Shown: positions 27 through 32,806 of the stretch, piece by piece | Position numbering within the stretch: the first letter of the stretch is position 1 | Layout of the letters: the number at the start of each line of letters is the position of its first letter | NCBI GenBank assembly: GCA_002269645.1 | Contig: NIVC01001496.1 | Location: forward strand, 1 to 32,806 | DNA length: 32,806 nucleotides | Direction: 5' to 3' | Source of the DNA: Macrostomum lignano | Taxonomy: Eukaryota | Made by a program: the position numbers and the translations under genes | Notes under the pieces: model-generated | Seen by the model: only the letters and a program-made list of their open reading frames with translations | Databases searched by the model: none | What the model was told of the DNA's origin: nothing

Positions 27-126
27 GCTTGCAGGACCGTCTTGATGAGCGTCTGGTGCCACGAGGGCATTTTCGCCAACAGCGGTTATTGAACAAAAAT
101 TTGCCGGACTTCAATCTTGTTGAACT
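27..126 (-). CDS. Probable further gene L exon (...RLKSGKFLFNNRCWRKCPRGTRRSSRRSCK)
   Basis: Acceptor ttgcag at 127, donor AAGC|GTAAGT at 26, CPRG motif. It is 100 nt, so the phase does not match the preceding exon by one base. Confidence 0.5.
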
Positions 127-3100
127 CTGCAATGTTTATTTTTTTGAGAGCAATAGTTAATAATCTATGATAATCGCTGGAAAGTCTTTGAGAAAGCTTT
201 CCTAGTCGTTATACAATAAAATTGGCTTACTGATGCACCGCCCTCCGCGCTTGTTCCTAATCATAGTGAAAGTTCGCGGGCACACCCGATAGTAGCCGAC
301 GCAAGTTCGTCCCCGGCGACGGTATCCGCTCGGGCAAAACTCTAAAATTCAGAGACAGCATAAGTTAGCGATGCGCAAGCCGCAAGCGAAATATCTCGGG
401 CCTTTGTCAACTTACTTCCTGGCTTATAACAGCGAGCTACAAACGCCCACTTCGTTTAAAGGCTCCGCGTCTTTTAAAGGCTTTCCAGATCTTTCTCAAT
501 TTTCTTTTCAGGGAACGCTTCAACTTTCTAGCAGTTGCCGCTCGTCTTCTGCGACTAAGTTTGGAGAGCCGGCGCCTTGCAATAGCGTATCTTCTATAGC
601 GACGCTTTACGATTTTTCTGAAGCGCCTGTACAGCCTTGGAACTCTTCTGCGCACGACGCACCTGGATCCACTTGGGCAGCGCTTCTTTCTGCATGGATC
701 TGAATTAATTTGATTGGAAAATAATATATCTCTCTCGCGTCTCTAAGTGCAAGAAACCGCATGTGAGAAAAATGAAATTATGTGACTCACTTGCTCTCTT
801 TGGTGCACAAACGGCGCGGGTAATGTAGCGCCGTTTGTTTCGCATGAGTCGTCTGTATTGTCGCCTTGTGGCGCGTCTCAGACGCCGTCTTAGCTTATTG
901 CGAATTCGTCGGTACGACCGGGTCGAACGACGGCGATGCCTTCGAAGAGTGCGCTTCAGTGACCGTCTCAAACTTCGGAAGCGTCTTGCCCGTCGTCGGC
1001 CTCGGAATCGCCGAGCGGCTGATCGTCTCAGACGTCGGTTTCGACGGATAGCGCGGGCCGCCAGACGTCGACGCCTACGGCCAAGCCTCCTGCGTATGCC
1101 ATGCATTCGAAGACGGAAACGTTTCCTACTGACTCTTAGATAGAAGCGGTACAGCCGGAAGGCTCGAGTTGGGATCCTTCTCACCACACAGCGACGGTTC
1201 TTTCCGCACTTCTTTCTGCTGCATGGATCTGAAAATTAAAAAATATCATCCACTGTTTGCCTCATTCGGAAATAATACGAGCTTATGGGCAGAAGGAATA
1301 GCAAATATTGCTATTTATTGAATTAACATAACGATTACTTACTAGACTTTCTGACGCAGCGTCCAACAGTGATTTTTCGACCCCTCTTTGACTTGACTCT
1401 GCGCACTTTGCACCTGTATCCCCGTCTACAGCGCTTTCTTCTGCAAGGATTTTTGGCAACGCACATGGCCCGACGAATAAATCGCCGTCCCTTGCGTCTG
1501 CCAAGTCGCTTGCGCAACATTCGAAGCCTTCTTTGCAGAGAGGTTGCAAGGATGCTCTTTTTCTTGTAGTACGAAACCACAGCTCGTTTCAGTCTTCTTC
1601 GATAAACCCTGGAAATTCTTCTATACAAAGAGCGCATCTTTTTCCTGATCGATTTCTTTGCTGCTTTGGTCGCCTTTTTAGACTTGTAATACAGAGCCTT
1701 GAAAATTCTCGCTTTTCTTCCAAACCAGCTTTTCAATGAGAAGACGCGTCTGGCGTACTTCTTCTGATTCCTTCTGAATCGGCGAACAACAGATTTTGGA
1801 ACGCGTCGTCTACGAGAAGAACGTCCACGCCGTCCCTTTCGTCGAGAGAATTTTCTAAAAAGCTTTTTGAATCGCCTTCCATAGCGCCTTGCCGCTCTTC
1901 TGAACCTTCCCCACAGTCGAGAGCGAGCTCGTCGCAATTTTCTAACAAATCTTTTCAGGTTACGCCTTGACCTGCGAACACGACGGACTCGAGAGCGCCG
2001 GGATCTGCGAATGCGTCTCAAAGCGTGTCTTAGCCAGAAAGAAAATGATTTTCCTGCTCTTCTGCTTCTCCGTGCCAAAAATTTACGGTGCACTCTGTGT
2101 CGGTGACGGAGTTTTTGCACAGTGCGGCGTAGCCGGGTGTGGAACCGTCTGTAGGCCCTCTTCACACTGATGCGGTAAAGCCTGTACCACCAAGTTGGAA
2201 CTTTCTTAACCACGCAGCGCTTTCCAGCTGAGCATCGAACTTTTCGACAGGATCCTAGATATGCAAAGGTGGGCGAAAAGAAATGCAGGTATATTGCAGT
2301 AGTGTAACTAAAATATCTGTCGCAGTTAAAAAAAACAAAGCACTCACTCGTCGCCTTTTTGATGCATCGAGCCACAGTCCTAACGCGGTTCTTGAAAACT
2401 CCCTTGCCTTGCTTCTTACGCAGTGATCTAAGCCTTTGAGCCAAGCGGCGCCTAGCCAGTCGTACTGAGCGACGATACTGCTTGAAAGCTGCACGCCTAC
2501 TTCTTCTGAAGCTTCTTACTCGACGACGGAACGCAACTCTGAGACGCTTCTTCGCACTGCCAGATTTTGCTCCCTTGAAGCTCGAGCGATAAGTTGCGGC
2601 ATACTTGCGGAAGTTTCTTGCAGCTTGGCGACTTCTTCTTCGGTAAGCCAACGTGATCTTCTTGTGACTGGCAAAGTAAGACTTTGTCAAAGCTCGTTTC
2701 TGACGAAGGAATGCGCTAAACTTCTTTGTAAACCGCCTCACATGCCTGCAAGAGAATCCCGACTTGCACTTGACTTTTGAACATTGATTCACTACACAAA
2801 CAGCAGCTCGTACAGCAGTCTTAGTTCTTCGATTCTTTCGAGAATGGCTTGATAGGCTACGCCTAAAACGCAGGCTGAGACTTCTTCTAGCCTTCAAGAA
2901 CTTTCTTCTTTGTTTACGAAGCTTCAAAACGTAAGATCGTCTTCGAAGTCTCCAGGATCTTCTCAAGCTCTTAACAGAGGCAGCTTTCTTCGCCTTAGAT
3001 GCTTTCCGAATAGCCCTCTTAAAAGTAGCTGACGCCCGTCTATAAGCCAACTTTGCAGATCGCCGACTTCTAACGAACCTTAGTTTCAGAGCTCGAAGCT

Positions 3101-6100
3101 GCTTGCGATATCCTTTGATCATTCTGCGCCTCTCTGAGTGAAATTTACGGCCCGCTTTTGTGATAATTCGTTTCACGATGCAACGCTTGCCTTTGGAGCA
3201 CCGTTTTTTAGCACACAAACCTAAAAAAGGGTGCAGGTATTTTCAATATCAAGAGAAACCAAAAAAACTACTTAGAAAAAGGGTTTTTCAAAATCTACAA
3301 AAATAAATAAAAACAAGACAATTATAGCCGACTAACCTCTGGAAGGTCGTCTCCTTCGGACGCATCTCTTCGATCCTCGTCTAGCTCGTCTCAGCAGTCG
3401 GATCAGCCGAGCGACTCTGCGCCTGTGCCTCGATCGAAGAGCGTTCAATCGTTTCTTGTGCAGTCGTGCAAGTCGAGCTCTGCGCTTCGCGTAGCTAGAC
3501 ACAACCGATGAAGCCAGCTGGCATCTGTACCTCACGGTCATGTACTTGTATGTTCCGCGGCAAGGATCTCCGAAGACGGCGTTGTTGCTTCGCACCCTGC
3601 ACGCTCGTCGGTTGTTGCACTTGGAAGCGATGACTTTGTTGGCTCGGCCGCTGCTGCACTTGTATGTCTTGCGGGGTCCTCGAGCGCAGTATTTGTTCGA
3701 TGTTCTGCCATAGAACCGCGCAGCACCCGGATGACGTATCTGGATGGACATCTGATGGTCAGAGATTTGCCCTCGCAAGCGTGCTTCACTCGCACTCCTG
3801 AAGCGGTAAATAATGCACCGTTCGTAAAAGCGTGATATACTCGTAAACAACCGAAAGCAAATAAATAAAGCAGTTTCAGTAGTATTGCTTACGGCGGTAG
3901 CGAGCTGGTGTTCGGCTCTTTCGGATGGAGGCTGCATGTCGTCGTCTCTCGGCGACAGTCCTGCTCTTGTGAGCTCGTCGCAGTTTGTTGATGCTTCTTC
4001 TGAGGCTTCGGATTCGCCTGCTAGATCTTCGTGTCACGCACTTCTGGTTCCTTCGGCAGGTTCGTCGGCCGCATTTCTTGCCTGAGTATGTTGTATTTCG
4101 GTGAGGAGCAACGTATGAACTTGGGTGAAAGTGCTTCAACTCTAAAATCCGTAGCTCAAAGTCTCACTAGATATTTGAGGAAGCAATTTACTAGGTGGGG
4201 CATCAATAGTTTACTTCTGTAGTTATTTTGATTTTAATAAACGGTCGACCGAATAGCCGACTAACCTCTGGAAGGTCGTCTCCTTCGGACGCATCTCTTC
4301 GATCCTCGTCTAGCTCGTCTCAGCAGTCGGATCAGCCGAGCGACTCTGCGCCTGTGCCTCGATCGAAGAGCGTTCAATCGTTTCTTGTGCAGTCGTGCAA
4401 GTCGAGCTCTGCGCTTCGCGTAGCTAGACACAACCGATGAAGCCAGCTGGCATCTGTACCTCACGGTCATGTACTTGTATGTTCCGCGGCAAGGATCTCC
4501 GAAGACGGCGTTGTTGCTTCGCACCCTGCACGCTCGTCGGTTGTTGCACTTGGAAGCGATGACTTTGTTGGCTCGGCCGCTGCTGCACTTGTATGTCTTG
4601 CGGGGTCCTCGAGCGCAGTATTTGTTCGATGTTCTGCCATAGAATCCGCGCAGCACCCGGATGACGTATCTGGATGGACATCTGATGGTCAGAGATTTGC
4701 CCTCGCAAGCGTGCTTCACTCGCACTCCTGAAGCGGTAAATAATGCACCGTTCGTAAAAGCGTGATATACTCGTAAACAACCGAAAGCAAATAAATAAAG
4801 CAGTTTCAGTAGTATTGCTTACGGCGGTAGCGAGCTGGTGTTCGGCTCTTTCGGATGGAGGCTGCATGTCGTCGTCTCTCGGCGACAGTCCTGCTCTTGT
4901 GAGCTCGTCGCAGTTTGTTGATGCTTCTTCTGAGGCTTCGGATTCGCCTGCTAGATCTTCGTGTCACGCACTTCTGGTTCCTTCGGCAGGTTCGTCGGCC
5001 GCATTTCTTGCCTGAGTATGTTGTATTTCGGTGAGGAGCAACGTATGAACTTGGGTGAAAGTGCTTCAACTCTAAAATCCGTAGCTCAAAGTCTCACTAG
5101 ATATTTGAGGAAGCAATTTACTAGGTGGGGCATCAATAGTTTACTTCTGTAGTTATTTTGATTTTAATAAACGGTCGACCGAATAGCCGACTAACCTCTG
5201 GAAGGTCGTCTCCTTCGGACGCATCTCTTCGATCCTCGTCTAGCTCGTCTCAGCAGTCGGATCAGCCGAGCGACTCTGCGCCTGTGCCTCGATCGAAGAG
5301 CGTTCAATCGTTTCTTGTGCAGTCGTGCAAGTCGAGCTCTGCGCTTCGCGTAGCTAGACACAACCGATGAAGCCAGCTGGCATCTGTACCTCACGGTCAT
5401 GTACTTGTATGTTCCGCGGCAAGGATCTCCGAAGACGGCGTTGTTGCTTCGCACCCTGCACGCTCGTCGGTTGTTGCACTTGGAAGCGATGACTTTGTTG
5501 GCTCGGCCGCTGCTGCACTTGTATGTCTTGCGGGGTCCTCGAGCGCAGTATTTGTTCGATGTTCTGCCATAGAATCCGCGCAGCACCCGGATGACGTATC
5601 TGGATGGACATCTGATGGTCAGAGATTTGCCCTCGCAAGCGTGCTTCACTCGCACTCCTGAAGCGGTAAATAATGCACCGTTCGTAAAAGCGTGATATAC
5701 TCGTAAACAACCGAAAGCAAATAAATAAAGCAGTTTCAGTAGTATTGCTTACGGCGGTAGCGAGCTGGTGTTCGGCTCTTTCGGATGGAGGCTGCATGTC
5801 GTCGTCTCTCGGCGACAGTCCTGCTCTTGTGAGCTCGTCGCAGTTTGTTGATGCTTCTTCTGAGGCTTCGGATTCGCCTGCTAGATCTTCGTGTCACGCA
5901 CTTCTGGTTCCTTCGGCAGGTTCGTCGGCCGCATTTCTTGCCTGAGTATGTTGTATTTCGGTGAGGAGCAACGTATGAACTTGGGTGAAAGTGCTTCAAC
6001 TCTAAAATCCGTAGCTCAAAGTCTCACTAGATATTTGAGGAAGCAATTTACTAGGTGGGGCATCAATAGTTTACTTCTGTAGTTATTTTGATTTTAATAA

Positions 6101-9100
6101 ACGGTCGACCGAATAGCCGACTAACCTCTGGAAGGTCGTCTCCTTCGGACGCATCTCTTCGATCCTCGTCTAGCTCGTCTCAGCAGTCGGATCAGCCGAG
6201 CGACTCTGCGCCTGTGCCTCGATCGAAGAGCGTTCAATCGTTTCTTGTGCAGTCGTGCAAGTCGAGCTCTGCGCTTCGCGTAGCTAGACACAACCGATGA
6301 AGCCAGCTGGCATCTGTACCTCACGGTCATGTACTTGTATGTTCCGCGGCAAGGATCTCCGAAGACGGCGTTGTTGCTTCGCACCCTGCACGCTCGTCGG
6401 TTGTTGCACTTGGAAGCGATGACTTTGTTGGCTCGGCCGCTGCTGCACTTGTATGTCTTGCGGGGTCCTCGAGCGCAGTATTTGTTCGATGTTCTGCCAT
6501 AGAACCGCGCAGCACCCGGATGACGTATCTGGATGGACATCTGATGGTCAGAGATTTGCCCTCGCAAGCGTGCTTCACTCGCACTCCTGAAGCGGTAAAT
6601 AATGCACCGTTCGTAAAAGCGTGATATACTCGTAAACAACCGAAAGCAAATAAATAAAGCAGTTTCAGTAGTATTGCTTACGGCGGTAGCGAGCTGGTGT
6701 TCGGCTCTTTCGGATGGAGGCTGCATGTCGTCGTCTCTCGGCGACAGTCCTGCTCTTGTGAGCTCGTCGCAGTTTGTTGATGCTTCTTCTGAGGCTTCGG
6801 ATTCGCCTGCTAGATCTTCGTGTCACGCACTTCTGGTTCCTTCGGCAGGTTCGTCGGCCGCATTTCTTGCCTGAGTATGTTGTATTTCGGTGAGGAGCAA
6901 CGTATGAACTTGGGTGAAAGTGCTTCAACTCTAAAATCCGTAGCTCAAAGTCTCACTAGATATTTGAGGAAGCAATTTACTAGGTGGGGCATCAATAGTT
7001 TACTTCTGTAGTTATTTTGATTTTAATAAACGGTCGACCGAATAGCCGACTAACCTCTGGAAGGTCGTCTCCTTCGGACGCATCTCTTCGATCCTCGTCT
7101 AGCTCGTCTCAGCAGTCGGATCAGCCGAGCGACTCTGCGCCTGTGCCTCGATCGAAGAGCGTTCAATCGTTTCTTGTGCAGTCGTGCAAGTCGAGCTCTG
7201 CGCTTCGCGTAGCTAGACACAACCGATGAAGCCAGCTGGCATCTGTACCTCACGGTCATGTACTTGTATGTTCCGCGGCAAGGATCTCCGAAGACGGCGT
7301 TGTTGCTTCGCACCCTGCACGCTCGTCGGTTGTTGCACTTGGAAGCGATGACTTTGTTGGCTCGGCCGCTGCTGCACTTGTATGTCTTGCGGGGTCCTCG
7401 AGCGCAGTATTTGTTCGATGTTCTGCCATAGAATCCGCGCAGCACCCGGATGACGTATCTGGATGGACATCTGATGGTCAGAGATTTGCCCTCGCAAGCG
7501 TGCTTCACTCGCACTCCTGAAGCGGTAAATAATGCACCGTTCGTAAAAGCGTGATATACTCGTAAACAACCGAAAGCAAATAAATAAAGCAGTTTCAGTA
7601 GTATTGCTTACGGCGGTAGCGAGCTGGTGTTCGGCTCTTTCGGATGGAGGCTGCATGTCGTCGTCTCTCGGCGACAGTCCTGCTCTTGTGAGCTCGTCGC
7701 AGTTTGTTGATGCTTCTTCTGAGGCTTCGGATTCGCCTGCTAGATCTTCGTGTCACGCACTTCTGGTTCCTTCGGCAGGTTCGTCGGCCGCATTTCTTGC
7801 CTGAGTATGTTGTATTTCGGTGAGGAGCAACGTATGAACTTGGGTGAAAGTGCTTCAACTCTAAAATCCGTAGCTCAAAGTCTCACTAGATATTTGAGGA
7901 AGCAATTTACTAGGTGGGGCATCAATAGTTTACTTCTGTAGTTATTTTGATTTTAATAAACGGTCGACCGAATAGCCGACTAACCTCTGGAAGGTCGTCT
8001 CCTTCGGACGCATCTCTTCGATCCTCGTCTAGCTCGTCTCAGCAGTCGGATCAGCCGAGCGACTCTGCGCCTGTGCCTCGATCGAAGAGCGTTCAATCGT
8101 TTCTTGTGCAGTCGTGCAAGTCGAGCTCTGCGCTTCGCGTAGCTAGACACAACCGATGAAGCCAGCTGGCATCTGTACCTCACGGTCATGTACTTGTATG
8201 TTCCGCGGCAAGGATCTCCGAAGACGGCGTTGTTGCTTCGCACCCTGCACGCTCGTCGGTTGTTGCACTTGGAAGCGATGACTTTGTTGGCTCGGCCGCT
8301 GCTGCACTTGTATGTCTTGCGGGGTCCTCGAGCGCAGTATTTGTTCGATGTTCTGCCATAGAATCCGCGCAGCACCCGGATGACGTATCTGGATGGACAT
8401 CTGATGGTCAGAGATTTGCCCTCGCAAGCGTGCTTCACTCGCACTCCTGAAGCGGTAAATAATGCACCGTTCGTAAAAGCGTGATATACTCGTAAACAAC
8501 CGAAAGCAAATAAATAAAGCAGTTTCAGTAGTATTGCTTACGGCGGTAGCGAGCTGGTGTTCGGCTCTTTCGGATGGAGGCTGCATGTCGTCGTCTCTCG
8601 GCGACAGTCCTGCTCTTGTGAGCTCGTCGCAGTTTGTTGATGCTTCTTCTGAGGCTTCGGATTCGCCTGCTAGATCTTCGTGTCACGCACTTCTGGTTCC
8701 TTCGGCAGGTTCGTCGGCCGCATTTCTTGCCTGAGTATGTTGTATTTCGGTGAGGAGCAACGTATGAACTTGGGTGAAAGTGCTTCAACTCTAAAATCCG
8801 TAGCTCAAAGTCTCACTAGATATTTGAGGAAGCAATTTACTAGGTGGGGCATCAATAGTTTACTTCTGTAGTTATTTTGATTTTAATAAACGGTCGACCG
8901 AATAGCCGACTAACCTCTGGAAGGTCGTCTCCTTCGGACGCATCTCTTCGATCCTCGTCTAGCTCGTCTCAGCAGTCGGATCAGCCGAGCGACTCTGCGC
9001 CTGTGCCTCGATCGAAGAGCGTTCAATCGTTTCTTGTGCAGTCGTGCAAGTCGAGCTCTGCGCTTCGCGTAGCTAGACACAACCGATGAAGCCAGCTGGC

Positions 9101-21100: not shown

Positions 21101-23841
21101 CGGATAAAATATCCGCAAATCGCAAGCCGCAATTCTATTTCTATTTGATTCAAATCGCTAAAGCGTTGTGGGTTATCTGCATTACCCAGTGCTCAAGTGA
21201 CTGCATCTTTAGTGAGAACTGCAATTTATGTTAAGGACTTACGCATGCAGTAGCGACCAACTTTCTTGAAGCCGCTCGGGCACACACGTCTGCGGCAGAG
21301 ACGGCCAGTCCTGCGCCAGCCTCTTGGGCATTTGCCAACAAAGCGTATCCGGGCACAGAATCTGCCCACTCGGCGGTAGAAACGGGGGCACCTGGTGTGC
21401 ACACAGCGCGATCCCCTGCGCACGTAGCCGGCCGGGCAGTTCAGCTTCTTGCAGACGCCTCGCACCTTTTTGTAACCTGCCGGACATCTTCGGCTGCCAC
21501 CCTTGGGTGGTCGGTAGACGCATCGAGATCCGCGTTTCCTGTAGTGTCTCGGGCAGACAATGCGAACGCAAGAAAAGCCACGTCTGTATCGCTTGACTCG
21601 TCTGAATCCACGTGCACATCTTCCAGCATTGATGACGCAGCGGAACCTGAAGCAGATGTAATACTTAGTATTTATTTTGTTCTTAAAGTATCTTGTATTC
21701 ACATTTGCTACTAAAGGAAAGTACCTGTAGCGCCTTCCGCGTCGCACGCGTCGCAGACTGTAACCGAGTGGGCACTTGGACGTGACGACAACGCACCTGA
21801 TCACTCCGCGGCGAATGCGCCGAGGCACCCGGCCGCTTGCACAGCGCTTGACACACCGCCTGCCTCGGCGGCGGTAGTTAAGCGGGCACGATCGAACGGT
21901 GCGCAAGCACTTTCTGCCTCTCCTGCGGTATCCTCTCGGGCATCTACAGTAAAAAATTGCACGCGCATCTTAGGTTTGCATTGCAACAATTTCAAATGCT
22001 ATGCTACTCGCAGTTTCAAAAATTACCTTGTCGATCCTCGGCGGAATCGGACGCAGCGCCTTCGATGGTAATAAAAGTTCTTGGGGCATCGGAAGCGATA
22101 GCGAACGCAAAAACGGCCACGGAGTCGGAATCCGGGCTTGCAGCTGCGGCGGCAGCTTCTACCGATCTTGATGAATCCACGACGGCACCGGACCAGGTGA
22201 CATCTGCCGCGGTAAACTCGATAGCCAGCTGCGCAGATGATGCGCATGCGCTTGATGCACCGGCTGCCTCTTCGACGGAAACCTTTGGGGCACCATTTTC
22301 GGGGCTTGTAGATTCGGTAGTAGCGAACGCACCGGGCGCCTCGGCGGACGTACGGCTTCGGGCAGTAAAGGCGGTAGCAACGATTTCCACGCTTCTTGTA
22401 TCCTCGTGGGCATTTGCGGAACAGACGCTTGACGAACTTGACAAAACGGGTTTTGAGCCGCTTCACACGACGGTAGATTGATCTCTTGATGATTCTTCCG
22501 CGCTTGGCCCGCCTTCGGAACCAGTCTCGAATCTTCTTCGCCGCTCTTGCCGCCGCTCTGGCCACTCTTCTAGCCTTGGCTCTAGCTAAAGCTTTTGCTC
22601 TTCTACTTGCTTTAGCGACGGCCCTGGCCAGAGCTCTGGCTCTTCGTCTCGCTGTGGCTTTGGCTCGCTTCAGGGCTAGAGCTCGTCTCCTGGCCCAGGC
22701 TCTCGCTCGGGCTGTGGCTCTTGCTTTTACTCTCGCCGCCGCCGCCGCCAAAGATCGGGCTCGGGCACGAATTAGGGCTTTGGCTCTGGCCAATGCTTTA
22801 GCTCTGGCTCTTGCTCTAGCTTTGGCTCTGGCCACTGCCCTGGCCAGGGCTCTGGCTTTTGCTCGGGCCAGTGCTCTCGTTCTGGCTCTTGCTCTAGCCA
22901 ATGCTCTAGCCACAGCTCTTGCCTTAGCCCGGGCTCTAGCTTTAGCACGTGCCAAGGCTCTGGCGACGGCCCGGGCACGAGCTCTGGCTCTGGCCCTTGC
23001 TCTCGCCGCTGCCTTGGCCAAAGCCCTAGCCCTGGCTTTGGCGATTGCGCGAGCTCTTGCGCGAGCTCTTGCCAAACGTCTGGCCAAAGCTCTAGCCCTG
23101 GCTCTAGCGATTGCTCTAGCTCTGGCTCGTGCTTTTGCCAACCGCCTGGCGATGGCCCGGGCACGAGCTTTAGCTCTGGCCCTTGCTCTGGCCGCTGCTC
23201 TAGCCGCTGCTCTGGCCAAAGCCCTTGCCTTGGCGCGAGCTCTTGCGCGTGCTCTTGCCACACGCCTGGCCAAAGCTTTAGCCTTGGCTCTAGCGATTGC
23301 GCGAGCTCTTGCGCGTGCTCTTGCCACACGTCTGGCCAAAGCTCTAGCTCTGGCTCTGGCAATTGCGCGAGCTCTTGCGCGGGCTCTTGCCAACCGTTTG
23401 GCTAAAGCTCTAGCCCTGGCTCTAGCAATGGCCCTGGCTCTGGCCCTGGCTCTAGCAGCAGCTCTGGCCCTGGCTCGAGCCCAAGCTCTGGCTCTGGCCC
23501 GCGCTCTTGCCGCAGCTCTGGCTGCTCTCCGCCGAGCCAGCAAGATGCGGCGCCTGAGGGCCCTGGCCCTCTGAATCGCCAGCCGCCTCAGCCTGGCGGC
23601 TCTCGCTCGGATGCGACGCATGCGTTTGCACGCCCATCCGCATCTGAAAGCGAGTGGAAAAAAGGCGTTAGGATTGTTCAGCACCTTCAACGCTAATTGA
23701 AAAAGCCTGCTGTTAAAAATAAGGGCAGGAATGATTCGAAGACAAAAATATGACTCAAACTCACCCCCAGGACTCTCCAACGTCGCTGGTTAGCGCAAGA
23801 AAAAGACAAACAGAAAGAAGAAACAGCACTGTGAGACGCAT
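27..23841 (-). CDS. Gene L: giant secreted polycationic modular protein (signal peptide, RA repeat, CPxG hairpins, 2x vWA, FOLN-like Cys modules, 15x SUEL lectin); 3' end probably beyond the left edge
   Basis: Manually spliced with GT-AG introns and consistent phases. Exons in transcript order: 23841-23765, 23643-22027, 21943-21725, 21646-21243, 21069-21019, 20918-20874, 20783-20688, 20580-20342, 20246-20005, 19867-19338, 19082-18966, 18865-18570, 18475-18281, 18171-17745, 17662-17531, 17451-17344, then 30 array exons 17094-3337, then 3220-2348, 2254-1343, 1228-791, 699-416, 341-231 and probably 126-27. The summed coding length is about 17.2 kb. Single-base frameshifts occur near 14565, 6504, 3715 and 441. 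Confidence 0.85.
231..341 (-). CDS. Gene L exon with CPxG hairpins: KFCPSGYRRRGRTCVGYYRVCPRTFTMIRNKRGGRCI
   Basis: Acceptor ttttag|AG at 342, donor ATCA|GTAAGC at 230. It is 111 nt, phase 1-1, and is not in the ORF track. Confidence 0.75.
416..3220 (-). CDS. Gene L post-array exons (3220-2348, 2254-1343, 1228-791, 699-416): six FOLN-like Cys modules with long Arg/Lys-rich insertions
   Basis: Examples: LCAKKRCSKGKRC...AVC, NQCSKVKCKSGFSC...ARC, SCRKVRCSAGKRC...AMC, NPCRRKRCRRGYRC...GRC, NPCSRKKCGKNRRC...AVC, NPCRKKRCPSGSRC...(VARC). The last exon needs +1 nt near 441. Confidence 0.85.
15981..16169 (-). CDS. Representative array exon A: first three Cys of a follistatin-N-like module plus Arg-rich segment
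   Basis: GKKCGRRTCRRNQKCVTRRSSRRIRSLRR...ARYRR. Acceptor catactcag|GC, donor CGCC|GTAAGC, phase 1-1. Confidence 0.85.
16352..16813 (-). CDS. Representative array exon B: SUEL-type (Gal_lectin / rhamnose-binding lectin) domain plus Arg-rich helix and closing Cys
   Basis: ACEGKSLTIRC...FYGR...C...C...C...C...NAVFGDPCRGTYKYMTVRYRC contains all 8 Cys and the YGR and DPC..T.KY signatures of SUEL domains. Acceptor cttcag|GA, donor AGAG|GTTAGT. Confidence 0.92.
17344..17662 (-). CDS. Gene L: two single-module follistatin-N-like exons (17662-17531, 17451-17344)
   Basis: NPCKKMRCQKGRKCIVR...AVCVKR and NLCRRVRCGRYRRCIVRR...ARCVGP fit C-x4-C-x5-C...C. Both are phase 1-1. A similar exon lies at 19082-18966. 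Confidence 0.8.
17745..18865 (-). CDS. Gene L vWA domain 2, hemicentin/VWA7 type (exons 18865-18570, 18475-18281, 18171-17745)
   Basis: Motifs MAFVVDTTGSM, FVISAFNDPKVGPI, GGGDCPERS, VIYVFTDAS and QVMFIITG.LCG. Splice phases (1, 0, 0, 1) are consistent. Confidence 0.9.
19338..20580 (-). CDS. Gene L vWA domain 1, hemicentin/VWA7 type (exons 20580-20342, 20246-20005, 19867-19338)
   Basis: Motifs VAFVVDVSGSM (MIDAS DxSxS), FILVPFADPKVGPV, GGGDCPEMS, IVYVFTDAS and VQLNFLLTG..CG match the N-terminal vWA of hemicentin-1 (FVFDVTGSM...LVPFHDPEIGPV...GGGDCPEMS...IYVFTDA). Confidence 0.9.
20688..21943 (-). CDS. Gene L exons 3-7: tandem C-P-x-G-[YF]-x4-G-x2-C hairpin repeats
   Basis: Exons 21943-21725, 21646-21243, 21069-21019 (RKSCPSGFVRRGRACYR), 20918-20874 (ARCARGFKKMGSVCI) and 20783-20688 (RRCPSGTRTTRYFCIRKRCPKFFRRVGQSCVR). 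All have canonical splice sites and in-frame lengths. Confidence 0.8.
22027..23643 (-). CDS. Gene L exon 2 (1617 nt): Arg/Lys-Ala alternating low-complexity region followed by 7 CPxG-type Cys hairpins
   Basis: Lies within ORF 22023..23780. Acceptor at 23644, donor ACAAG|GTAATT at 22026. The length is a multiple of 3 (phase 2-2). Confidence 0.85.
23765..23841 (-). CDS. Gene L exon 1: signal peptide MRLTVLFLLSVCLFLALTSDVGES-W
   Basis: ATG at 23841, basic n-region (MR), hydrophobic core and small-residue cleavage region. The donor GG|GTGAGT (phase 2) matches the phase-2 acceptor ctttcag|A TGC GGA at 23643, giving WGCGWACKR. This exon is not in the supplied ORF track. Confidence 0.85.
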
Positions 23842-23849
23842 CTTGTTGT

Positions 23850-25895: not shown

Positions 25896-26402
25896 CAGGG
25901 ACGCCAACCAAGACACAGGGCGCCAACCAAGACACAGGGGCGCCAACCAAGACACAGGGACGCCAGTCAAGACACAGGGACGCCAATCAAGACACAGGGG
26001 CACCAATCAAGACACAGGGACGCCAATCAAGACACAGGGACGCCAGTCAAGACACAGGGACGCCAATCAAGACACAGGGGCACCAATCAAGACACAGGGA
26101 CGCCAATCAAGACACAGGGACGCCAGTCAAGACACAGGGACGCCAATCAAGACACAGGAACGCCAATCAAGACACAGGAACGCCAATCAAGACACGGATG
26201 CCAGTCAAGACACAGGGGCGCCAACCAAGACACAGGGCGCCAACCAAGACACAGGGCGCCAACCAAGACACAGGGCGCCAACCAAGACACAGGGCGCCAA
26301 CCAAGACACAGGGCGCCAACCAAGACACAGGGCGCCAACCAAGACACAGGGCGCCAACCAAGACACAGGGCGCCAACCAAGACACAGGGACGCCAAGACA
26401 CC
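25896..26402 (+). repeat. Minisatellite with 20-bp (aagacacagggacgccaatc) and 19-bp (aagacacagggcgccaacc) units, about 25 copies
   Basis: Direct inspection. Overlapping ORFs in several frames are repeat artefacts. Confidence 0.92.
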
Positions 26403-26467
26403 AAATACTGGCGCCCCCCCCCCTTACAAAAAACAAAATACTCTGCCAGGGTCTTTAGAAGTCAGCG

Positions 26468-26920: not shown

Positions 26921-27088
26921 AGCAAAGAGATCCTCACGGATGCCGGGAACCAGACCGCCCGGGTAGATGAGCTGCTGTAACCAAAATGACCGCTAAAATT
27001 AATTTGGACAGGTCATTAATTTTTTTAGCCATGGCATTTCGAATTTTTTCTAAAGGCTTTTCGAGTATTACGCTACAGATCAAAGAAA

Positions 27089-27937
27089 ATGATGCTGCCG
27101 TTGAGCAACATAGATGAGCTTCGCGCCTGGGTTGAAGTATTTGACGCCCAGGCCAGATCCAAAGGAGTCGAAGATACCGACGAGAGACGAGCGCTGACCG
27201 ACGCTTTCATGGGCTGCCTCGGGGTCGCTGAGCTCATAAAAGTCAAGCAGCTGGTTGCTCCAAAAACCCCGTCTGCGATGAAATGGTCTGAAATCAAGCA
27301 ATGCCTACTGGCGTTTGTGGAGCCCAAGAAGAAACTGCAGATCGCTGAGAGGACAGCCTTCATGTCTATGCGCCAGGCCGAAGGCGAAACCGTCACCAGC
27401 TATGCCGCTCGTCTCAGGGAGCAAGCCGTCGTATGCGAGTTCGAGAGCCTGAAAAAGGAAGGAGCGGACCCCGCCGAAGCGCTCATCAAGATGCGGCTCA
27501 TTGCCGGTCTGGCCAACTCGAACATCAGGAACAAGGTGCTCGAGTGTGAAGTGACTCAAGAACTGACGGTCGATCAGGTCACAGAATATGTTCAGCAGCT
27601 GCTGATGGTCAGCAACTTTTCAGCTGGGTCCCAGGCTGCTGCTCACTCGACTCTCGTGGATTCGGTGGTGCACCAGGCTAGGTCGCTGTCGACCGCGGGT
27701 CTGACTACGGCTGATGAAGCTCACTGCCATCCGGATAGCTCCGGCTCTGTCAACGTTAATTCGGTTATGAGGCAGAAGCAGAACTTCGGACACCAGCGCT
27801 GTCAGCGTTGCGGGTTGAGATCGCACCAGAAGCCCGCTGACTGCCGAGCCCTGAGAGCCACCTGCAATCAATGTGGAAAGCCTGGCCACTTTCTTAGCTC
27901 AGTTGCTCAGCAGCTAGCTCAGTTGCTCAGCAGCTAG
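27089..27937 (+). mobile_element. Truncated Ty3/Gypsy-like gag ORF
   Basis: MRQAEGETVTSYAARLREQAVVCEF, LIAGL...IRNKVL, and Zn-knuckle-like CQRCGLRSH...C plus CNQCGKPGHF, whose last Cys is lost where a 20-bp duplication begins near 27896. No pol or LTR is recognisable in the window. Confidence 0.75.
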
Positions 27938-29797: not shown

Positions 29798-29803
29798 TTT
29801 ATT
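29798..29803 (-). promoter_or_regulatory. Putative polyadenylation signal (AATAAA) of gene R
   Basis: The plus strand reads tttatt about 80 nt downstream of the TGA at 29884-29886. Confidence 0.55.
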
Positions 29804-29883
29804 TTCCAAAGCCAATAATCCTCGTCATTTGAGGGAGAGAGGAAATTCTATCACCACACTTAGTCTATCAACGAGGAAGCTGA

Positions 29884-32806
29884 TCAACGCCTCCTGGATC
29901 TGCCGCTCTTTCTTGACCTTCTTGAGACGCGTCGACGAACTCTCCTTGAGACGCGTCGACGAACTCTCCTTGAGACGCGTCGACGAACTCTCCTTGAGAC
30001 GCGTCGACGAACTCTCCTTGAGACGCGGCGACGAACTCTCCTTGAGACGCGTCGACGAAGTCTCCTTGAAAAGCGACGAGATTTACCCCAAAAACGTCGA
30101 ACCTTCCGAGATACACGGCGAGCTCTCCTTGAGACGCGTCGACGAAGTCTCCTTGAAAAGCGACGAGATTTACCCCAAAAACGTCGAACCTTCCGAGATA
30201 CACGGCGAGCTCTCCTTGAGACGCGTCGACGAAGTCTCCTTGAAAAGCGACGAGATTTACCCCAGAAGCGACGGACTTTCTTTGAGGCACGACGAACTCT
30301 CCCTGAGACGCGTCGACGAACTCTCCTTGAAAAGCGACGAGATTTACCCCAAAAACGTCGAACCTTCCGAGATACACGGCGAGCTCTCCTTGAGACGCGT
30401 CGACGAAGTCTCCTTGAAAAGCGACGAGATTTACCCCAAAAACGTCGAACATTCCAAGATACACGGCGGGCTCTCTTTGAGACGCGTCGACGAACCCTCC
30501 TTGAAAAGCGATAGACTCTCCTTCTCCAGGAAATGCGACGGGTTCTTCTCCTCACGCTTGAGCAGCGAGCCACGAGCTTTCGGCTTCGTTGGAAAGCGCC
30601 GCGTCTTCTGTATAGTCTGTGCAGCTTTCTCAGCTTCCGTTTGAGTTTGCGAGTCAGTTTGCGAACGGCGACTTTGCGCTTGCGACGACGCAGCTTACTC
30701 AACCGACGCCGGACTGATACGAACTTCTTGATTTGGCGTTTTGCGATTCTGATGAATTTCTTCTGAAGCCTGGACTGCTTTCTTCTAACAACGCACCTTG
30801 TGCCTTTTCGACAGCGTTTCTTGCTGCAAGGGTCTGAAATGAATACAATAGTAATAAAAATATTACTGAAATATTTAAAACAAACATGTCGTTTATTTGG
30901 AAGCACTTTATCATGCGTATCATCGATCGTATTACATATCGTATCTAGAAATACTTGCTGCAATTTCAGCAAACATTAAAATAAAAATCCTACCTAATCA
31001 AATATAATGCTTTCAACTCACTATTTAGCCTCTTGACACAAATTGCACGGGTCTTGTAGCGTCTCCGGTAGCTCAAGTATCGTGCGGAGAAACGCCTCAC
31101 AGCGCTTCTAAATCGCCGTTTCAGCGCGGCTCTCCGTCGACGGAAAGACCTCCGCGATCGGTTTCGGAATCTTTGCAGTTTTCGCCTCACAGAGCGTTTT
31201 ACGGCTTTGACACGCCTAGCGAGCTTCCGACCGCGGAGACGCTTCCTGAGAGACTTGCGCACCTTTTTGTACTTCTTTACGACTCGCCTCGCGAATCTTC
31301 GCCTCTTGTTGCGGAGACGTTTGAAAAGTCGTCGAGCCTTGCGCCTGAAGCGTCTACGGTTTGCCCTGGCAAACCAGCGGAAACCTTTGAAAGTACGAGT
31401 CGACACCCGCCTGACGATGCATCGCTTGCCCTTGGAACAGTTCACCTTGCTGCACTTGTCTGAAATTTGATGCTTTACTCTTTGTAGGTCTGTATATAGA
31501 CTGAGAAAGTTGCAAAAAATCCATGACTTTTGACAGAAAATTTAAAGTTATTAAAAAGTACGAGTACTTACTGGCTTTCTTCTCGCATCGAGCGACAGAT
31601 CTGGTTCGGCCACTTTTTGCTTTGATCTTTCGCACCCGGCAGATAAACCCTCGACTACAACGCTTTCTCCGGCATGGATTTACTGCAACGCAGATGGCTC
31701 GGCGTGTGTAGCGTCTTCTGAAGCTTCTTGGTCTCCGCTTGAACTTTCTTAGCCGTTTCTTCAATGATCTCACGACATTAACCCTCCGTTTGTAGTAGGA
31801 AACAACTGCTCGCTTCAACATCTTTCTGTAGGCTTTTTTGATCTTTTTGTATCTTCTCAAGATCTTCTTCTTCAGCTTCTTCCAGTCGGCAGCTGTTGCT
31901 TTCTTACCTCTCTTGTAGGCCGACTTTAGCTGTCGGAACTGCTTCGCGACTCGTCTCTTCAGGAAACGAACGCGACGTGCAAACTTTCGCGCATTTCTTT
32001 TGAACCTTCTGAAAACTGACTTTCGGGCACGCTTCTTCGATTTAGCGTATTTTTCAGTCTGCGCTTAGAAACCCTTCGAATGGTCTTCCTAAACTTTCTT
32101 CGGTACCGGCGAGCGGCACGTCTGTACCTGCCCCAGAGGAACGATCCAGCTCCTCTGTTTCGTCGAGCAGAACGGGACCCGGATTTGCGACTGCGTCTTC
32201 CAGCCCCCCTTCTGTAACGCCTCTTTCCGCCAAGACGCCTAACGGCGCGTCCAAACCAGCGTCTAAATGATTTGACGGCACGCCTCCTACGACGGTTCAA
32301 ACGTCTTCTGTACTGCCTGCGGAGATAACGAAGCTTCCGAATAGACCGCACTAGACGAGAGCGTTTTCGTCTGTTGCCTCTCTTCAGACTTCGCCTGTAC
32401 CGCCTGAACCATCTGCGAGAAACAACAGTCGAGACGCAACGCTTGCCGGCTGAACACTTGACATTCTTGCAAGATCCTGAAAGCAAAGTCAGAAATTGCG
32501 AATGAGAGGTCTGTTACTGCTCTTGTTTAAAAATGTATGATTTTCAGTCAACAAACCAGCTTACTTCTCACTCTGCGGATGCAACGAGCTACAGTCCTGA
32601 CTCGGTTCTTGAAAGCCGATTTATTTGCATGCTTTCTACGCAGCGCCTTGCGCCTCAGCACGTAGTTTCTTCTAGCAAGTTTCACGGCACGTCGGTACTT
32701 CAGATGAGCAGCACGTCTAGCACGTCGGAAACGTCTCACCTTGCGTCGTAGAGCCGATCTAAGTGATCTTCTAGCGGATGCGGTCTTCGCGCGTCTAATG
32801 CCGGAG
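29884..32806 (-). CDS. Gene R (3' part): paralog of gene L, Arg/Lys-rich FOLN-like modules ending in a protamine-like tail
   Basis: Exons >32806-32565, 32476-31572 (needs +1 nt in the A5 run at 32050-32054 to read LKKYAKSKKRARKSVFRRF), 31459-31022 and 30833-29884 (TGA). They are colinear with gene L exons 3220-416: for example FKNRVRTVARCI is shared and the third exon is 438 nt in both genes. Confidence 0.85.
29912..30510 (-). repeat. Coding tandem repeats: 24-nt unit (RRVRRRVS) x about 6 and 87-nt unit (RRFWGKSRRFSRRLRRRVSRRARRVSRKV) x about 5
   Basis: gagacgcgtcgacgaactctcctt is repeated directly, and RRFWGKS occurs five times in the minus-strand translation. Confidence 0.9.

Follow-up and report, generated by a model that had tools for sequence, protein, structure and literature searches.

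A giant secreted polycation with a 15-fold SUEL lectin array in Macrostomum lignano: a candidate scaffold of the worm's surface secretion

Gene L of Macrostomum lignano is a genuine, translated gene, and its product is present in footprint material left by the animal. The protein can be found in databases and in a published supplement, yet it has been described by nobody. On balance, it appears to be a multivalent, polycationic lectin that serves as an extracellular scaffold in the secretion on the worm's surface, with a mucus or rhabdite origin favoured over the adhesive organ. The analysis covers one stretch of genomic DNA of 32,806 nucleotides (contig NIVC01001496.1), referred to as the window; its features are collected in Table 1.

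Table 1. Features of gene L and its upstream paralog in the window.
Feature	Position	Strand	Description	Basis
Gene L exon 1	23765..23841	-	ATG and signal peptide MRLTVLFLLSVCLFLALTSDVGESWG; donor GTGAGT	direct reading
(RA)n polycation region	22536..23643	-	~370 aa, strict R/A alternation, 22-residue super-repeat; 5' part of exon 2 (22027-23643)	
Basic two-cysteine hairpins CPxGYxxxGxxC	20688..22535	-	~23 hairpins; end of exon 2 and five short exons	
VWA_4 domain 1 and basic Cys-containing tail	19338..20580	-	exons 20580-20342, 20246-20005, 19867-19338; DVSGS...TDA	
Small C-x4-C-x5-C...C module exon	18966..19082	-		splice model
C-x4-C-x5-C module, then VWA_4 domain 2, then Cys modules	17745..18865	-	exons 18865-18570, 18475-18281, 18171-17745; DTTGS...TDA	
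Two exons, each one small C-x4-C-x5-C...C module	17344..17662	-	17662-17531 and 17451-17344	
Tandem array	3337..17094	-	15 repeats of 930 bp, each encoding a Cys motif, a basic helix, a SUEL lectin, and a second basic helix	
K/R-rich C-terminal region	451..3220	-	exons 3220-2348, 2254-1343, 1228-791, 699-451; six C-x4-C-x5-C motifs	
Two further CPxG-type coding segments	27..341	-	341-231 and 126-27; end at GTAAGT donor	
Upstream tandem paralog, C-terminal ~800 codons	29884..32806	-	K/R-rich, C-x4-C-x5-C modules; stop 29884-29886	

Gene model and composition

Gene L lies on the minus strand with its ATG at 23841. The splice model built from the window features 54 exons separated by GT..AG introns of 40–255 nt and encodes 5,659 aa as far as position 244; with the coding segments 341-231 and 126-27, the total within the window amounts to ~5,700 aa. 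The junction 451->341 has a weak GTGGGC donor located past an in-frame stop at ~440, and canonical sites give no in-frame closure at the junction 231->126. The NCBI protein PAA50029.1 is identical to the model over 483 aa after correction of two junctions in the hairpin region by this entry. Since the coding segments end at a GTAAGT donor at position 27, the gene runs out of the window, and the full product comprises at least 5,700 residues—probably ~6,500.

The signal peptide MRLTVLFLLSVCLFLALTSDVGESWG is of the classic n/h/c type, with a hydropathy peak of 3.15 at residues 5-15. Hydropathy never exceeds 1.25 thereafter, and the model contains neither a second hydrophobic nor a transmembrane segment, in agreement with the secreted product proposed by an earlier, sequence-only reading of this DNA. 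The composition of the model (R 1558, K 508, D 31, E 35, Cys 5.0%, Gly 4.8%) corresponds to 36.5% R+K and 1.2% D+E—a net charge of ~+2000. The proportion of one third Arg+Lys estimated earlier is found exactly in array exon B (51/154), and the near absence of acidic residues extends over all 5,659 aa. Likewise, the dozens of small disulfide modules can be counted as 26 C-x4-C-x5-C motifs and ~23 CPxGYxxxGxxC hairpins. A protamine-like or nuclear basic protein is ruled out by the signal peptide, the extracellular domain types, and the presence in deposited material.

The N-terminal half

The (RA)n region is encoded by 66/186-bp tandem repeats. Its hydrophobic moment at 180° is 1.03 compared with 0.30 ± 0.11 in shuffles, and AlphaFold2 without an alignment predicts a single long helix at low confidence (pLDDT ~60). 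The subsequent hairpin region (aa 436-905) carries 47 Cys. The Antistasin Pfam match in this region is marginal (21.5 bits, E 3.4e-4, against a cut-off of 21.2), its score being the sum over three short stretches in a repetitive 157-aa Cys-rich segment, and the EB and cEGF matches there stay under the cut-off. FOLN (PF09289) matches the small module exon 18966..19082 at E 0.059 and 14 bits against a cut-off of 21.1, covering only the first 12 of 22 profile positions. Judged by sequence, all four matches reflect resemblance without family membership.

Both hemicentin-type vWA domains of the sequence-only reading are recovered once the exons are spliced, and the Pfam VWA_4 alignments cross the predicted splice junctions. 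VWA1 matches PF25106 at E 1.6e-34 and 119.4 bits (profile positions 2-150 of 169) and VWA2 at E 2.4e-38 and 131.8 bits (positions 2-141 of 169), the cut-off being 27 bits. Of the MIDAS-type residues, VWA1 features DVSGS and TDA, with DxSxS intact, and VWA2 features DTTGS (DxTxS) and TDA; placement of the middle Thr would take a structure, and no solved structure related to these domains is detectable in the PDB by sequence. The DTTGS of VWA2 in place of DxSxS is a point against the favoured scaffold reading.

Gene L is under purifying selection. Compared with a related genome fragment, dN/dS ranges from 0.17 to 0.32 in four of five orthologous exons, basic linkers included, with 0.17 for the VWA2 region and 0.32 for exon 17662-17531; exon 17451-17344 has saturated synonymous sites (pN 0.21, pS 0.83) and yields no ratio. 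A further ortholog, L003, crosses the 18570|18475 junction uninterrupted at 70% identity; an intron is absent from one ortholog. M. lignano itself has at least three paralogs.

The SUEL array

Each array unit is built from exon A, of 189 nt, encoding the motif CGRRTCRRNQKC and a basic linker, and exon B, of 462 nt, encoding the SUEL lectin and a basic helix. In an alignment of 14 units starting from 16164—the first unit, with its variant exon A, being left out—the only differences are one substitution and three 1-nt deletions. The SUEL exon matches PF02140 at 71.6 bits (cut-off 31.4; E 7e-20) and is present in 15 copies, the number given by the sequence-only reading. Matches to rhamnose-binding lectins in the PDB reach down to E 6e-58: the eight Cys as well as ACEG, FYGRT, and FGDPCRGTYKYM can be aligned position for position with those of 5H4S and CSL3, and the sugar-site motifs CEG, YGR, DPC, and YKY are intact compared with solved rhamnose/galactose-binding lectins. 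Each domain is itself basic, with 22 K+R versus 2 D+E in 87 aa. The basic tail is predicted to be helical (pLDDT ~90), its amphipathicity being modest at 1-2 SD above shuffles.

Gene L might be read, alternatively, as encoding a polyprotein precursor that convertases of the secretory pathway would cut at dibasic/RXKR sites into individual SUEL lectins and cationic amphipathic helices, with an antimicrobial or defensive role in mucus. The model contains 113 RX[K/R]R sites, which hint that proprotein convertases might cut the chain so that it is not one giant scaffold, and Arg runs on both sides of the array units, the predicted helicity of the tails, and the symmetrical exons with identical units—recalling peptide-precursor arrays—point the same way. 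Rhamnose-binding lectins are, in addition, commonly immune lectins. However, the long basic stretches are apparently bracketed by Cys (C-x4-C-x5-C ... C), which would tie the fragments together after cleavage, and the slight amphipathicity of the tails speaks against released amphipathic helices. This precursor is considered quite improbable.

The three single-base deletions affect the reading frame. The same A is deleted twice in the SUEL exon (~6504 and ~3715), and a G is missing from a basic tail at ~14565. Read literally, the frame closes in the third array unit, and a truncated product of ~2,300 aa would result if all three deletions were real. The spliced product of more than 5,700 aa claimed earlier holds as to its signal peptide and a model of ~5,700 aa, but its long reading frame is not literally open because of the 1-nt deletions in three array units. 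A product of this size requires the deletions to be assembly errors or to lie in skipped exons. Skipping would preserve the frame since exons A and B are both of phase 1-1; assembly errors are plausible since, in a comparison with a second assembly, 28 of 47 differences are 1-nt indels. Over 13.5 kb, the window is 99.6% identical to contig NIVC01003734.1 of Mlig_3_7 (assembly GCA_002269645.1), which assigns the locus to M. lignano itself, a provenance that the sequence-only reading did not know.

That the giant ORF is partly an assembly construct, with an array copy number or frameshifts that may be wrong or real, and that the functional product may be much shorter (~2,300 aa or 3,863 aa), is given very little credence. 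The deletions do fall among otherwise identical units, the assemblies of the locus differ mainly by 1-nt indels, an older M. lignano assembly breaks ahead of the array, and a short-read transcript encodes just 3,863 aa. The latter figure is nevertheless a lower bound because short-read assemblers collapse identical repeats. Furthermore, an identical deletion in two units three periods apart, with 100% identity elsewhere, argues for residual consensus errors or a copied block; exon skipping leaves the frame intact; and a peptide downstream of the array has been detected.

The C-terminal region and the upstream paralog

The C-terminal region 451..3220 reaches 43.5% K+R with 0.1% D+E. It is colinear with UniProt A0A1I8JAD7, and the segments 27..341 are colinear with the C-terminal CPxG array of this paralog. 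A colinear alignment of 614 positions with 48% identity likewise links the C-terminal region to the paralog upstream of gene L (32806-29884), whose end features (RRVSRRVRR)n encoded by 24/87-bp tandem repeats. This paralog is smaller than gene L: its transcriptome entry has 1,639 aa, and NCBI annotates 2,210 aa. Neither lectin nor vWA is found in its ~800 codons within the window. Hence, of the tandem lectin/vWA pair described earlier, the colinear upstream paralog is retained, but the lectin/vWA character of the pair is not visible, since the window contains no more of the paralog than its last ~800 codons.

Detection in footprint material

Expression is documented by nine tryptic peptides of gene L in the footprint mass spectrometry of the same animal (Dataset S2, Wunderer et al. 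2019, PMC6410801). They cover VWA1 (NIVNVINVNAK, FILVPFADPK, VGPVTISR, and NSIVYVFTDASPSR), VWA2 (FVISAFNDPK and SGSVIYVFTDASAK), the SUEL unit (SNNAVFGDPCR and CQLASSVVSSYAK), and, downstream of the array, the C-terminal region (AAVCVVNQCSK). The last of these is common to five database entries and may thus derive from a paralog; YPTALAFGR, from the same entry as the gene L peptides, is absent from the window. This entry is an 11,590-nt transcript encoding 3,863 aa (457 kDa, pI 12.1, Gal-lectin/hemicentin), annotated by the authors as HMCN1 at 5e-21 (PMC6410801). The upstream paralog is represented by one peptide, GAGSFLWGR, in an entry of 1,639 aa (pI 12.5, galactose-lectin; PMC6410801). The gene L protein is never discussed in that study. 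In public annotation, it is split into hypothetical and 'SUEL-type lectin domain-containing' fragments. The architecture, put forward as unrecognised, has indeed never been discussed in print, but its fragments are annotated and its peptides are part of a published supplement.

In the footprint sample, the mucus protein RNA1509_276 dominates (score 185), and tubulin and PDI are present as well (PMC6410801). Because such samples contain cellular proteins, presence in footprints is no proof of secretion onto the substrate.

The same data bear on a role of gene L in the adhesive organs, as an overlooked third duo-gland adhesive protein: a cohesive polycation that would bind Gal-beta(1-3)-GalNAc glycans of Mlig-ap2 through its SUEL array and would be targeted, through its charge, by the anionic releaser. 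This role is rather unlikely. Its peptides do occur in footprint mass spectrometry alongside ap1 and ap2, Mlig-ap2 bears the PNA ligand Gal-beta(1-3)-GalNAc, and SUEL recurs in temporary adhesives—in sea urchin alpha-tectorin-like protein, sea star Sfp1, and the Hydra basal disc. Attachment of M. lignano is blocked by heparin and chondroitin sulfate, and release by Lys, Arg, or Mg2+ (PMC6410801); heparin sensitivity is compatible with any polycation. In addition, the entry RNA815_38 (3,590 aa, cbEGF, IgGFc-binding-like, pI 11.5) has four peptides in common with gene L—a hint of a vWD/EGF continuation as in Sfp1 and ap1. In its extended form, gene L would continue into vWD/EGF in the manner of Sfp1/alpha-tectorin and be a third structural component of the temporary adhesive, with its SUEL domains binding Mlig-ap2 glycans and its charge as the real or a shared releaser target; this form is unlikely.

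Several observations stand against the adhesive organs. Double RNAi of ap1 and ap2 entirely abolishes the adhesive vesicles, and neither galactose (up to 0.1 M) nor PNA affects attachment (PMC6410801). Later literature still gives ap1 and ap2 as the footprint constituents, the checked Mlig-ap1/ap2 probe primers are not in the window, and the gene L peptides are not among the PNA pull-down and tail dataset entries that are listed.

A reproductive secretion—cement-gland egg glue, an eggshell or antrum secretion, or a seminal fluid component—is very unlikely. SUEL lectins were first found in eggs, and the family evolves fast: its paralogs differ in domain order and SUEL number, and one ortholog is without an intron. 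The cement and prostate glands of M. lignano produce abundant secreted proteins. However, gene L protein was detected in material that crawling worms left on glass, and the checked Mlig-ap1/ap2 probe primers also lack a match to gene L. A weak further point is that RNA815_38—an id that may not be gene L—does not occur among the region-specific candidates listed in PMC4490696.

Comparison with known systems

Mlig-ap1, the cohesive adhesive protein, is one of the closest counterparts and comes from the same animal: It is giant (>5,000 aa), secreted, extremely Lys/Arg-rich, equipped with lectin and Cys-rich modules, and present in footprints (PMC6410801). Its proposed action is polycation–polyanion binding that is blocked by heparin (PMC6410801). 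Mlig-ap1 features a CTL-vWD-C8-TIL-17xEGF core and KSRKVN/SRKPRRKNRKSRKP-type repeats, whereas gene L features 15 SUEL, two VWA_4, (RA)n, and R-rich helices, with no ap1 domain within the window. A profile search of the 5,659-aa model, which is the window part of the gene, finds no C-type lectin, vWD, C8, TIL, or cbEGF. Identity with Mlig-ap1 (transcripts RNA815_13121, RNA815_317, and RNA815_27695) is rejected, as its primers are absent from the window; the earlier view of a distinct family is thereby upheld. Mlig-ap1 has been localised and has an RNAi phenotype, whereas gene L is known from sequence and footprint peptides alone; the footprint sample shared by both also has mucus and cellular proteins.

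The ap3 proteins of Minona ileanae and Theama mediterranea (PMC6745481, PMC9229212) are, like gene L, very large secreted stand-alone polycations with a signal peptide. They consist of near-pure Gly/Arg/Lys(/His/Ser) low complexity (GRK / GRKHS) without domains. Gene L is not of this type: its Gly content is 4.8%, Arg far outnumbers Lys, and the chain is interspersed with folded modules of the lectin, VWA, and Cys types.

Sea star Sfp1 and the sea urchin alpha-tectorin-like protein share with gene L several SUEL domains in a giant Cys-rich secreted protein and come from temporary-adhesion footprints. They are not polycations and combine SUEL/Gal-lectin with vWD, C8, and EGF, whereas gene L has VWA_4 and, in the window, no vWD/EGF. 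In the paper that makes the sea-star/urchin adhesive comparison, Nectin is predicted to be negatively charged in seawater.

The SUEL family (SUL-I 5H4S, CSL3 2ZX0, and latrophilin RBL 2JX9) shares with the gene L units the 8-Cys pattern, CEG, YGR, DPC, and (K)Y(L/M). Known members have one to three domains of ordinary charge, whereas gene L carries 15 basic copies per chain flanked by Arg-rich helices. VWA1 and VWA2 resemble the N-terminal VWA of hemicentin-1 (VWA_4, PF25106) but are strongly basic; the Ig, G2F, EGF, and fibulin modules of hemicentin have no match anywhere in the model.

The M. lignano proteins A0A1I8JAD7 / A0A1I8GDF5, A0A1I8JEL7, A0A1I8GUE1, and A0A1I8I8N4 share building blocks with gene L (CPxG, SUEL, C-x4-C-x5-C, VWA_4, and K/R tail). 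A0A1I8JAD7 / A0A1I8GDF5 bear the name 'SUEL-type lectin domain-containing protein', and A0A1I8JEL7, A0A1I8GUE1, and A0A1I8I8N4 are K/R-rich VWA_4 proteins; A0A1I8JAD7 differs from gene L by a single SUEL, placed ahead of VWA_4, and by the lack of a tandem array. These UniProt paralogs carry automatic annotations only and have no study behind them.

Proposed role and significance

In the favoured reading of a surface-secretion scaffold, the gene L protein would be left on the substrate along with the mucus and the adhesive secretions of the worm. The predicted chain runs from the signal peptide through ~370 aa of Arg-Ala, ~23 hairpins, two VWA domains, 15 array units, and the K/R tail to more hairpins, and may act as an extracellular multivalent cross-linker. 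With ~2,000 net positive charges, the chain would condense polyanions, for example sulfated/sialylated mucins or glycocalyx; the SUEL array would add specific, avidity-based binding of galactose- or rhamnose-type sugars; and the Cys modules and VWA domains may mediate covalent or metal-assisted self-association. Combined, these features could turn secreted granule content into a cohesive gel. The block of attachment by heparin and chondroitin sulfate, and of release by Lys, Arg, or Mg2+, is in keeping with such polyanion binding in this animal.

Rhabdites are classically acidophilic, i.e., rich in basic protein. As for the glands, the lean is toward body-wide mucus/rhabdite-type glands rather than tail adhesive organs, on a basis that is negative and indirect: The footprint sample is dominated by a mucus protein, the loss of ap1 and ap2 already removes the adhesive vesicles, and galactose leaves adhesion undisturbed.

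Among models of reversible underwater adhesion, M. lignano is the best understood; in its published mechanism, an anionic releaser neutralises one polycation, Mlig-ap1. The gene L family is a second set of giant secreted polycations—still more charged, endowed with lectin arrays, and undiscussed in the footprint proteome—and the perfectly identical 930-bp units of gene L defeat short-read transcriptomes and gene annotation. Should gene L act in the adhesive organs, the experiments with heparin, Lys/Arg, and Mg2+ would have to be reinterpreted, and as a third adhesive component, it would require a revision of the published two-protein model of attachment and release. If it belongs to rhabdites or mucus, it would be, to our knowledge, the first molecular candidate for their basic matrix. 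As a natural design in which ~2,000 positive charges are paired with the avidity of 15 lectin domains, it is relevant to coacervate and glycan-binding biomaterials.

Gene model and locus

Gene L, the minus-strand gene for a giant secreted polycation, lies in metazoan-type DNA with short GT..AG introns, and the coding potential of the window is entirely minus-strand. The splice model was obtained with a small dynamic-programming gene finder trained on K/R-rich codons and was then corrected by hand in exon 1 and both VWA domains, with two junctions placed via the NCBI protein PAA50029.1. Exons of 2–12 nt called around frameshifts and past the stop of the upstream paralog were discarded as artefacts. 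The corrected model features 54 exons and 5,659 aa as far as position 244 and agrees with PAA50029.1 across 483 residues. Gene L runs off the window since its two extra coding segments at the low-coordinate end close on a splice donor (Table). In addition, three stretches of the window (700-455, 336-232, and 111-28) are colinear with the paralog A0A1I8JAD7. This supports the prediction that gene L goes on beyond the in-frame stop at ~440 by way of the weak donor GTGGGC. For the 231->126 junction, canonical splice sites give no in-frame closure.

Features of gene L and its surroundings, with related database entries
Feature	Position	Strand	Description
Gene L exon 1	23841-23765	(-)	Encodes MRLTVLFLLSVCLFLALTSDVGESWG; GTGAGT donor at end
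(RA)n repeat tract	22776-23523		66/186-bp DNA tandem repeats encoding the (RA)n region of gene L
Array	17094-3337	(-)	Fifteen units, 930 bp each
Array exon A			189 nt; CGRRTCRRNQKC plus basic linker; phase 1-1
Array exon B			462 nt; SUEL plus basic tail; phase 1-1
Two extra coding segments of gene L	341-231 and 126-27	(-)	End at GTAAGT donor
Paralog repeat tract	29921-30511		24/87-bp tandem repeats encoding the C-terminal (RRVSRRVRR)n of the upstream paralog
Minisatellite	25896-26396		Intergenic; ~25 copies of 20-bp unit CAGGGACGCCAATCAAGACA, 93% identity
Gag-like ORF	27089-27937	(+)	282 aa, between both genes; CX2CX4H-type zinc-knuckle motifs near C-terminus
Antisense ORFs	e.g. 22486-23574	(+)	Up to 362 aa; antisense to Arg/Ala-rich exons
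PAA50029.1			NCBI; 624 aa, partial, 'hypothetical protein BOX15_Mlig000911g8'; gene L fragment
537-aa piece			NCBI annotation; second fragment at locus
Upstream gene			NCBI annotation; 2,210 aa
A0A1I8JAD7, A0A1I8GDF5			'SUEL-type lectin domain-containing protein'; hairpins, one SUEL, Cys motifs, VWA_4, and K/R tail colinear with gene L; ~620 aa hairpins

Window 32048-18558 (13.5 kb) matches the end of contig NIVC01003734.1 (M. lignano assembly GCA_002269645.1) at 99.6% identity, which identifies the window as DNA of M. lignano, a species cited in the sequence-only reading for comparison only. The two assemblies differ at 47 positions over the locus, 28 of them 1-nt indels (ten in exons)—which shows that the long-read consensus is error-prone here. 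Because of these indel errors, gene L is split into fragments in the NCBI annotation. PAA50029.1 loses the correct frame after ...GAWIKMK at a 1-nt homopolymer difference (A5 against A4; older assembly, window 19731 vs L002), and its last ~140 residues are hence an out-of-frame translation.

The long antisense ORFs are a by-product of GC-rich repetitive codons and not genes, although a prokaryote-style ORF caller would list them. The intergenic 282-aa ORF resembles a remnant of a retroelement Gag. Its sole Pfam match is a weak zf-CCHC hit (E 0.12), no pol ORF adjoins it, and it is also found in the Mlig_3_7 contig, as is the 20-bp minisatellite in a slightly different copy register. Exact-product look-ups of the gag ORF and of the 154-aa SUEL ORF gave no match. 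Rfam and tRNA scans of the window gave none either, and a bacterial promoter/terminator scan, a method irrelevant to a metazoan gene, stayed at shuffle level.

Domain architecture of the gene L product

The gene L product features, in order, a signal peptide, an (RA)n region, hairpins (two-cysteine CPxGYxxxGxxC modules), a first VWA_4 domain, small Cys modules, a second VWA_4 domain, more small modules, the array, a K/R-rich region, and hairpins again, the last of which run past the window edge. Past exon 1, no segment of the model is hydrophobic enough for a membrane span. The model consists of 27.5% R, 9.0% K, 1.2% D+E, and 5.0% Cys and carries a net charge of ~ +2000 at a mass of ~670 kDa. 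A recount of array exon B confirms the earlier figure of 51 K+R among its 154 residues.

In the (RA)n region, Arg and Ala alternate strictly over ~370 aa, overlaid by a super-repeat of 22 residues; the hydrophobic moment of the region at 180 degrees reaches 1.03 vs 0.30±0.11 in shuffles. The repeat tracts encoding this region and the paralog C-terminus likely differ in length between alleles. About 23 basic hairpins separate the (RA)n region from VWA_4 domain 1. The spliced VWA domains match PF25106 (VWA_4) with 119 and 132 bits in alignments that cross the predicted junctions. VWA1 reads DVSGS...TDA and VWA2 DTTGS...TDA; no solved structure is detectable by sequence for either. The small C-x4-C-x5-C...C modules, which follow both VWA_4 domains, have no convincing Pfam family: Their resemblance to FOLN concerns its first half and falls short of the FOLN cut-off (E 0.059), EB and cEGF matches stay under theirs, and Antistasin passes its cut-off of 21.2 bits, with 21.5, only when three short repetitive Cys-rich stretches are summed. 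The K/R-rich region behind the array (857 aa) has 43.5% K+R, 0.1% D+E, and six more Cys motifs.

The SUEL exon matches PF02140 with 71.6 bits and aligns with the solved rhamnose/galactose-binding lectins 5H4S (6e-58) and CSL3 (1e-29) and with latrophilin RBL. The unit retains all eight Cys as well as the motifs CEG, YGR, DPC, and YKY. The signal peptide, SUEL lectins, and two hemicentin-type vWA domains assigned by the sequence-only reading thus agree with exon 1 and the PF02140 and PF25106 matches. In AlphaFold2 models, the basic tail helix of the array unit is the sole confident part (pLDDT ~90); computed without alignments, the SUEL fold stays below 50 and the (RA)n helix at ~60, which is low confidence.

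The SUEL array

Of the 15 units, all but the first, whose exon A is a variant, were aligned; these 14 are identical including introns, save one substitution and three 1-nt deletions. This identity means very recent amplification or ongoing homogenization. An identical A deletion occurs in the SUEL exon of two units (~6504 and ~3715) and a G deletion in the basic tail of the third unit (~14565). The deletions are probable consensus errors given the indel error rate of the assemblies, and the footprint proteome includes a tryptic peptide encoded beyond the array. The product of more than 5,700 aa proposed earlier would need the deletions to be such errors or the affected exons to be skipped; in the literal reading, the frame is shut in the third unit.

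The array is young and lineage-specific, because one paralog has a single SUEL at a different position and the related genome fragment L001 (Logan, SRR24204725) departs after the first unit into unrelated sequence (L001 2030-2699, no similarity to the next unit of the window). The 15-unit array may thus be absent or different in the L001 species. L001 carries orthologous exons for the VWA2 end, two small modules, exon A, and exon B at ~73% nucleotide identity. By Nei-Gojobori, pN is 0.17 and pS 0.52 overall, and dN/dS is 0.17–0.32 in the four computable exons, which take in the basic linkers; the fifth (17451-17344) gives no ratio owing to saturation of its synonymous sites. In a second ortholog fragment, L003 (SRR31628403), VWA2 is 70% identical, and the ORF is continuous across the predicted 18570|18475 junction: L003 148-678, aligned to window 18865-18281, lacks the VWA2-splitting intron 18569-18476 of M. 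lignano. This represents the gain or loss of an intron within the genus-level family.

Detection in the footprint proteome

Dataset S2, the footprint proteome in the mass-spectrometry supplement of Wunderer et al. 2019, contains an 11,590-nt transcript annotated 'Galactose binding lectin domain; HMCN1 5e-21' (3,863 aa, 457 kDa, pI 12.1) with the peptides NIVNVINVNAK, FILVPFADPK, VGPVTISR, NSIVYVFTDASPSR, FVISAFNDPK, SGSVIYVFTDASAK, SNNAVFGDPCR, CQLASSVVSSYAK, and AAVCVVNQCSK (PMC6410801). The gene L model contains all nine: They map to VWA1 and VWA2, to the SUEL unit (15 times), and to the C-terminal region. This is a good yield, since no more than 46 distinct tryptic peptides with at least 7 residues are present in the model. 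A tenth peptide, YPTALAFGR, is absent from the window, which fits a continuation of gene L beyond it. A length of 3,863 aa would be expected of a short-read assembly with identical units collapsed; adding the missing units suggests a product of ~6,500 aa.

A second entry (4,920 nt, Gal-lectin score 143.8, 1,639 aa, pI 12.5) includes GAGSFLWGR (PMC6410801), which within the window is encoded only by the upstream paralog. This paralog therefore has SUEL domains too, located outside the window, and is likewise deposited. The better-scoring polycation of the table, RNA815_38 / RNA1310_79.1 (3,590 aa, pI 11.5, cbEGF + IgGFc-binding-like, 18 peptides; PMC6410801), has four peptides in common with gene L (SUEL-unit and C-terminal), whereas the window lacks its vWD/EGF-type peptides. 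This entry may represent a 3' continuation, isoform, or homeolog of gene L.

The main text of PMC6410801 makes no mention of the gene L, paralog, or RNA815_38 proteins. Positional expression and in situ data were sought under Mlig000911, RNA815_38, and SRR24204725, none of which occurs in the searchable literature text; the accessible part of the PMC4490696 supplement holds no exact entry.

Relation to Mlig-ap1 and other proteins

The adhesive protein Mlig-ap1 is encoded by transcripts RNA815_13121, RNA815_317, and RNA815_27695 (PMC6410801). An identity of gene L with Mlig-ap1 or a part of it is ruled out by transcripts, primers absent from the window, repeat motifs, and domains: Within the window, gene L carries neither the ap1 repeats KSRKVN and SRKPRRKNRKSRKP nor the CTL-vWD-C8-TIL-EGF core. 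The separate family proposed by the sequence-only reading is upheld on these grounds. RNA815_38 was likewise rejected as Mlig-ap1, not being among the ap1 transcripts.

A profile-free exhaustive search with PAA50029.1 returned 1,336 proteins at E<=1e-3, of which most are ordinary VWA proteins and only nine score below 1e-30; no family member was found outside Macrostomum. The best matches are automatically named M. lignano UniProt entries, and several K/R-rich tandem VWA_4 proteins also occur. The upstream paralog is 48% identical to gene L over 614 aligned positions. The family thus has at least three members in M. lignano, plus orthologs in the SRR24204725 and SRR31628403 samples. A homology search with the array unit gave one Logan ortholog and a fish lectin only; one with the paralog C-terminus gave no match, probably because of composition filters. 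Protein P0007, a 1,846-aa uninterrupted ORF on an ENA metagenome contig (7,875 bp), consists of nearly all Lys-rich CPKGYKKVGKxC hairpins and thus mirrors the hairpin array of gene L with lysine in place of arginine.

Giant K/R-rich secreted proteins are a known kind in flatworm surface secretions, e.g., ap1 and ap3. Gene L combines 15 basic SUEL and two basic VWA_4 domains, (RA)n, Cys-bracketed Arg-rich helices, and a perfectly homogenized exon-pair array. It exists in databases as unnamed fragments and in the supplement table only, and the literature searched holds no description of this architecture, in line with the earlier failure to recognize it from described proteins.

Proposed function and gland of origin

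The signal peptide, the extracellular module types, the many disulfides, and the presence in deposited material point to a structural polycation of the extracellular space. In M. lignano, attachment is abolished by heparin and chondroitin sulfate and release is blocked by cations (PMC6410801), so that assembly of secretions by charge is established for this animal. The gene L product would condense anionic glycoconjugates electrostatically, its 15 lectin domains would bind galactose/rhamnose-type sugars by avidity, and its Cys modules and VWA domains could mediate self-association.

The adhesive organ is a possible source, given roughly half the weight of a mucus or rhabdite gland. The product is found alongside ap1 and ap2, yet the checked ap1 in situ/RNAi primers are absent from the window, and those probes hence do not target gene L. 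SUEL domains recur in the temporary adhesives of sea urchins, sea stars, and Hydra, and Mlig-ap2 bears Gal-beta(1-3)-GalNAc; adhesion is, however, unaffected by galactose and PNA, and adhesive vesicles are wholly lost on ap1+ap2 double RNAi. Rhabdites are classically acidophilic, i.e., rich in basic protein. The footprint sample is dominated by the mucus protein RNA1509_276 (score 185), with tubulin and PDI also present (PMC6410801). Because of these last two features and the points against the adhesive organ, the evidence leans toward an origin in mucus or rhabdite glands, with roughly twice the weight. The mechanism is the same for both origins.
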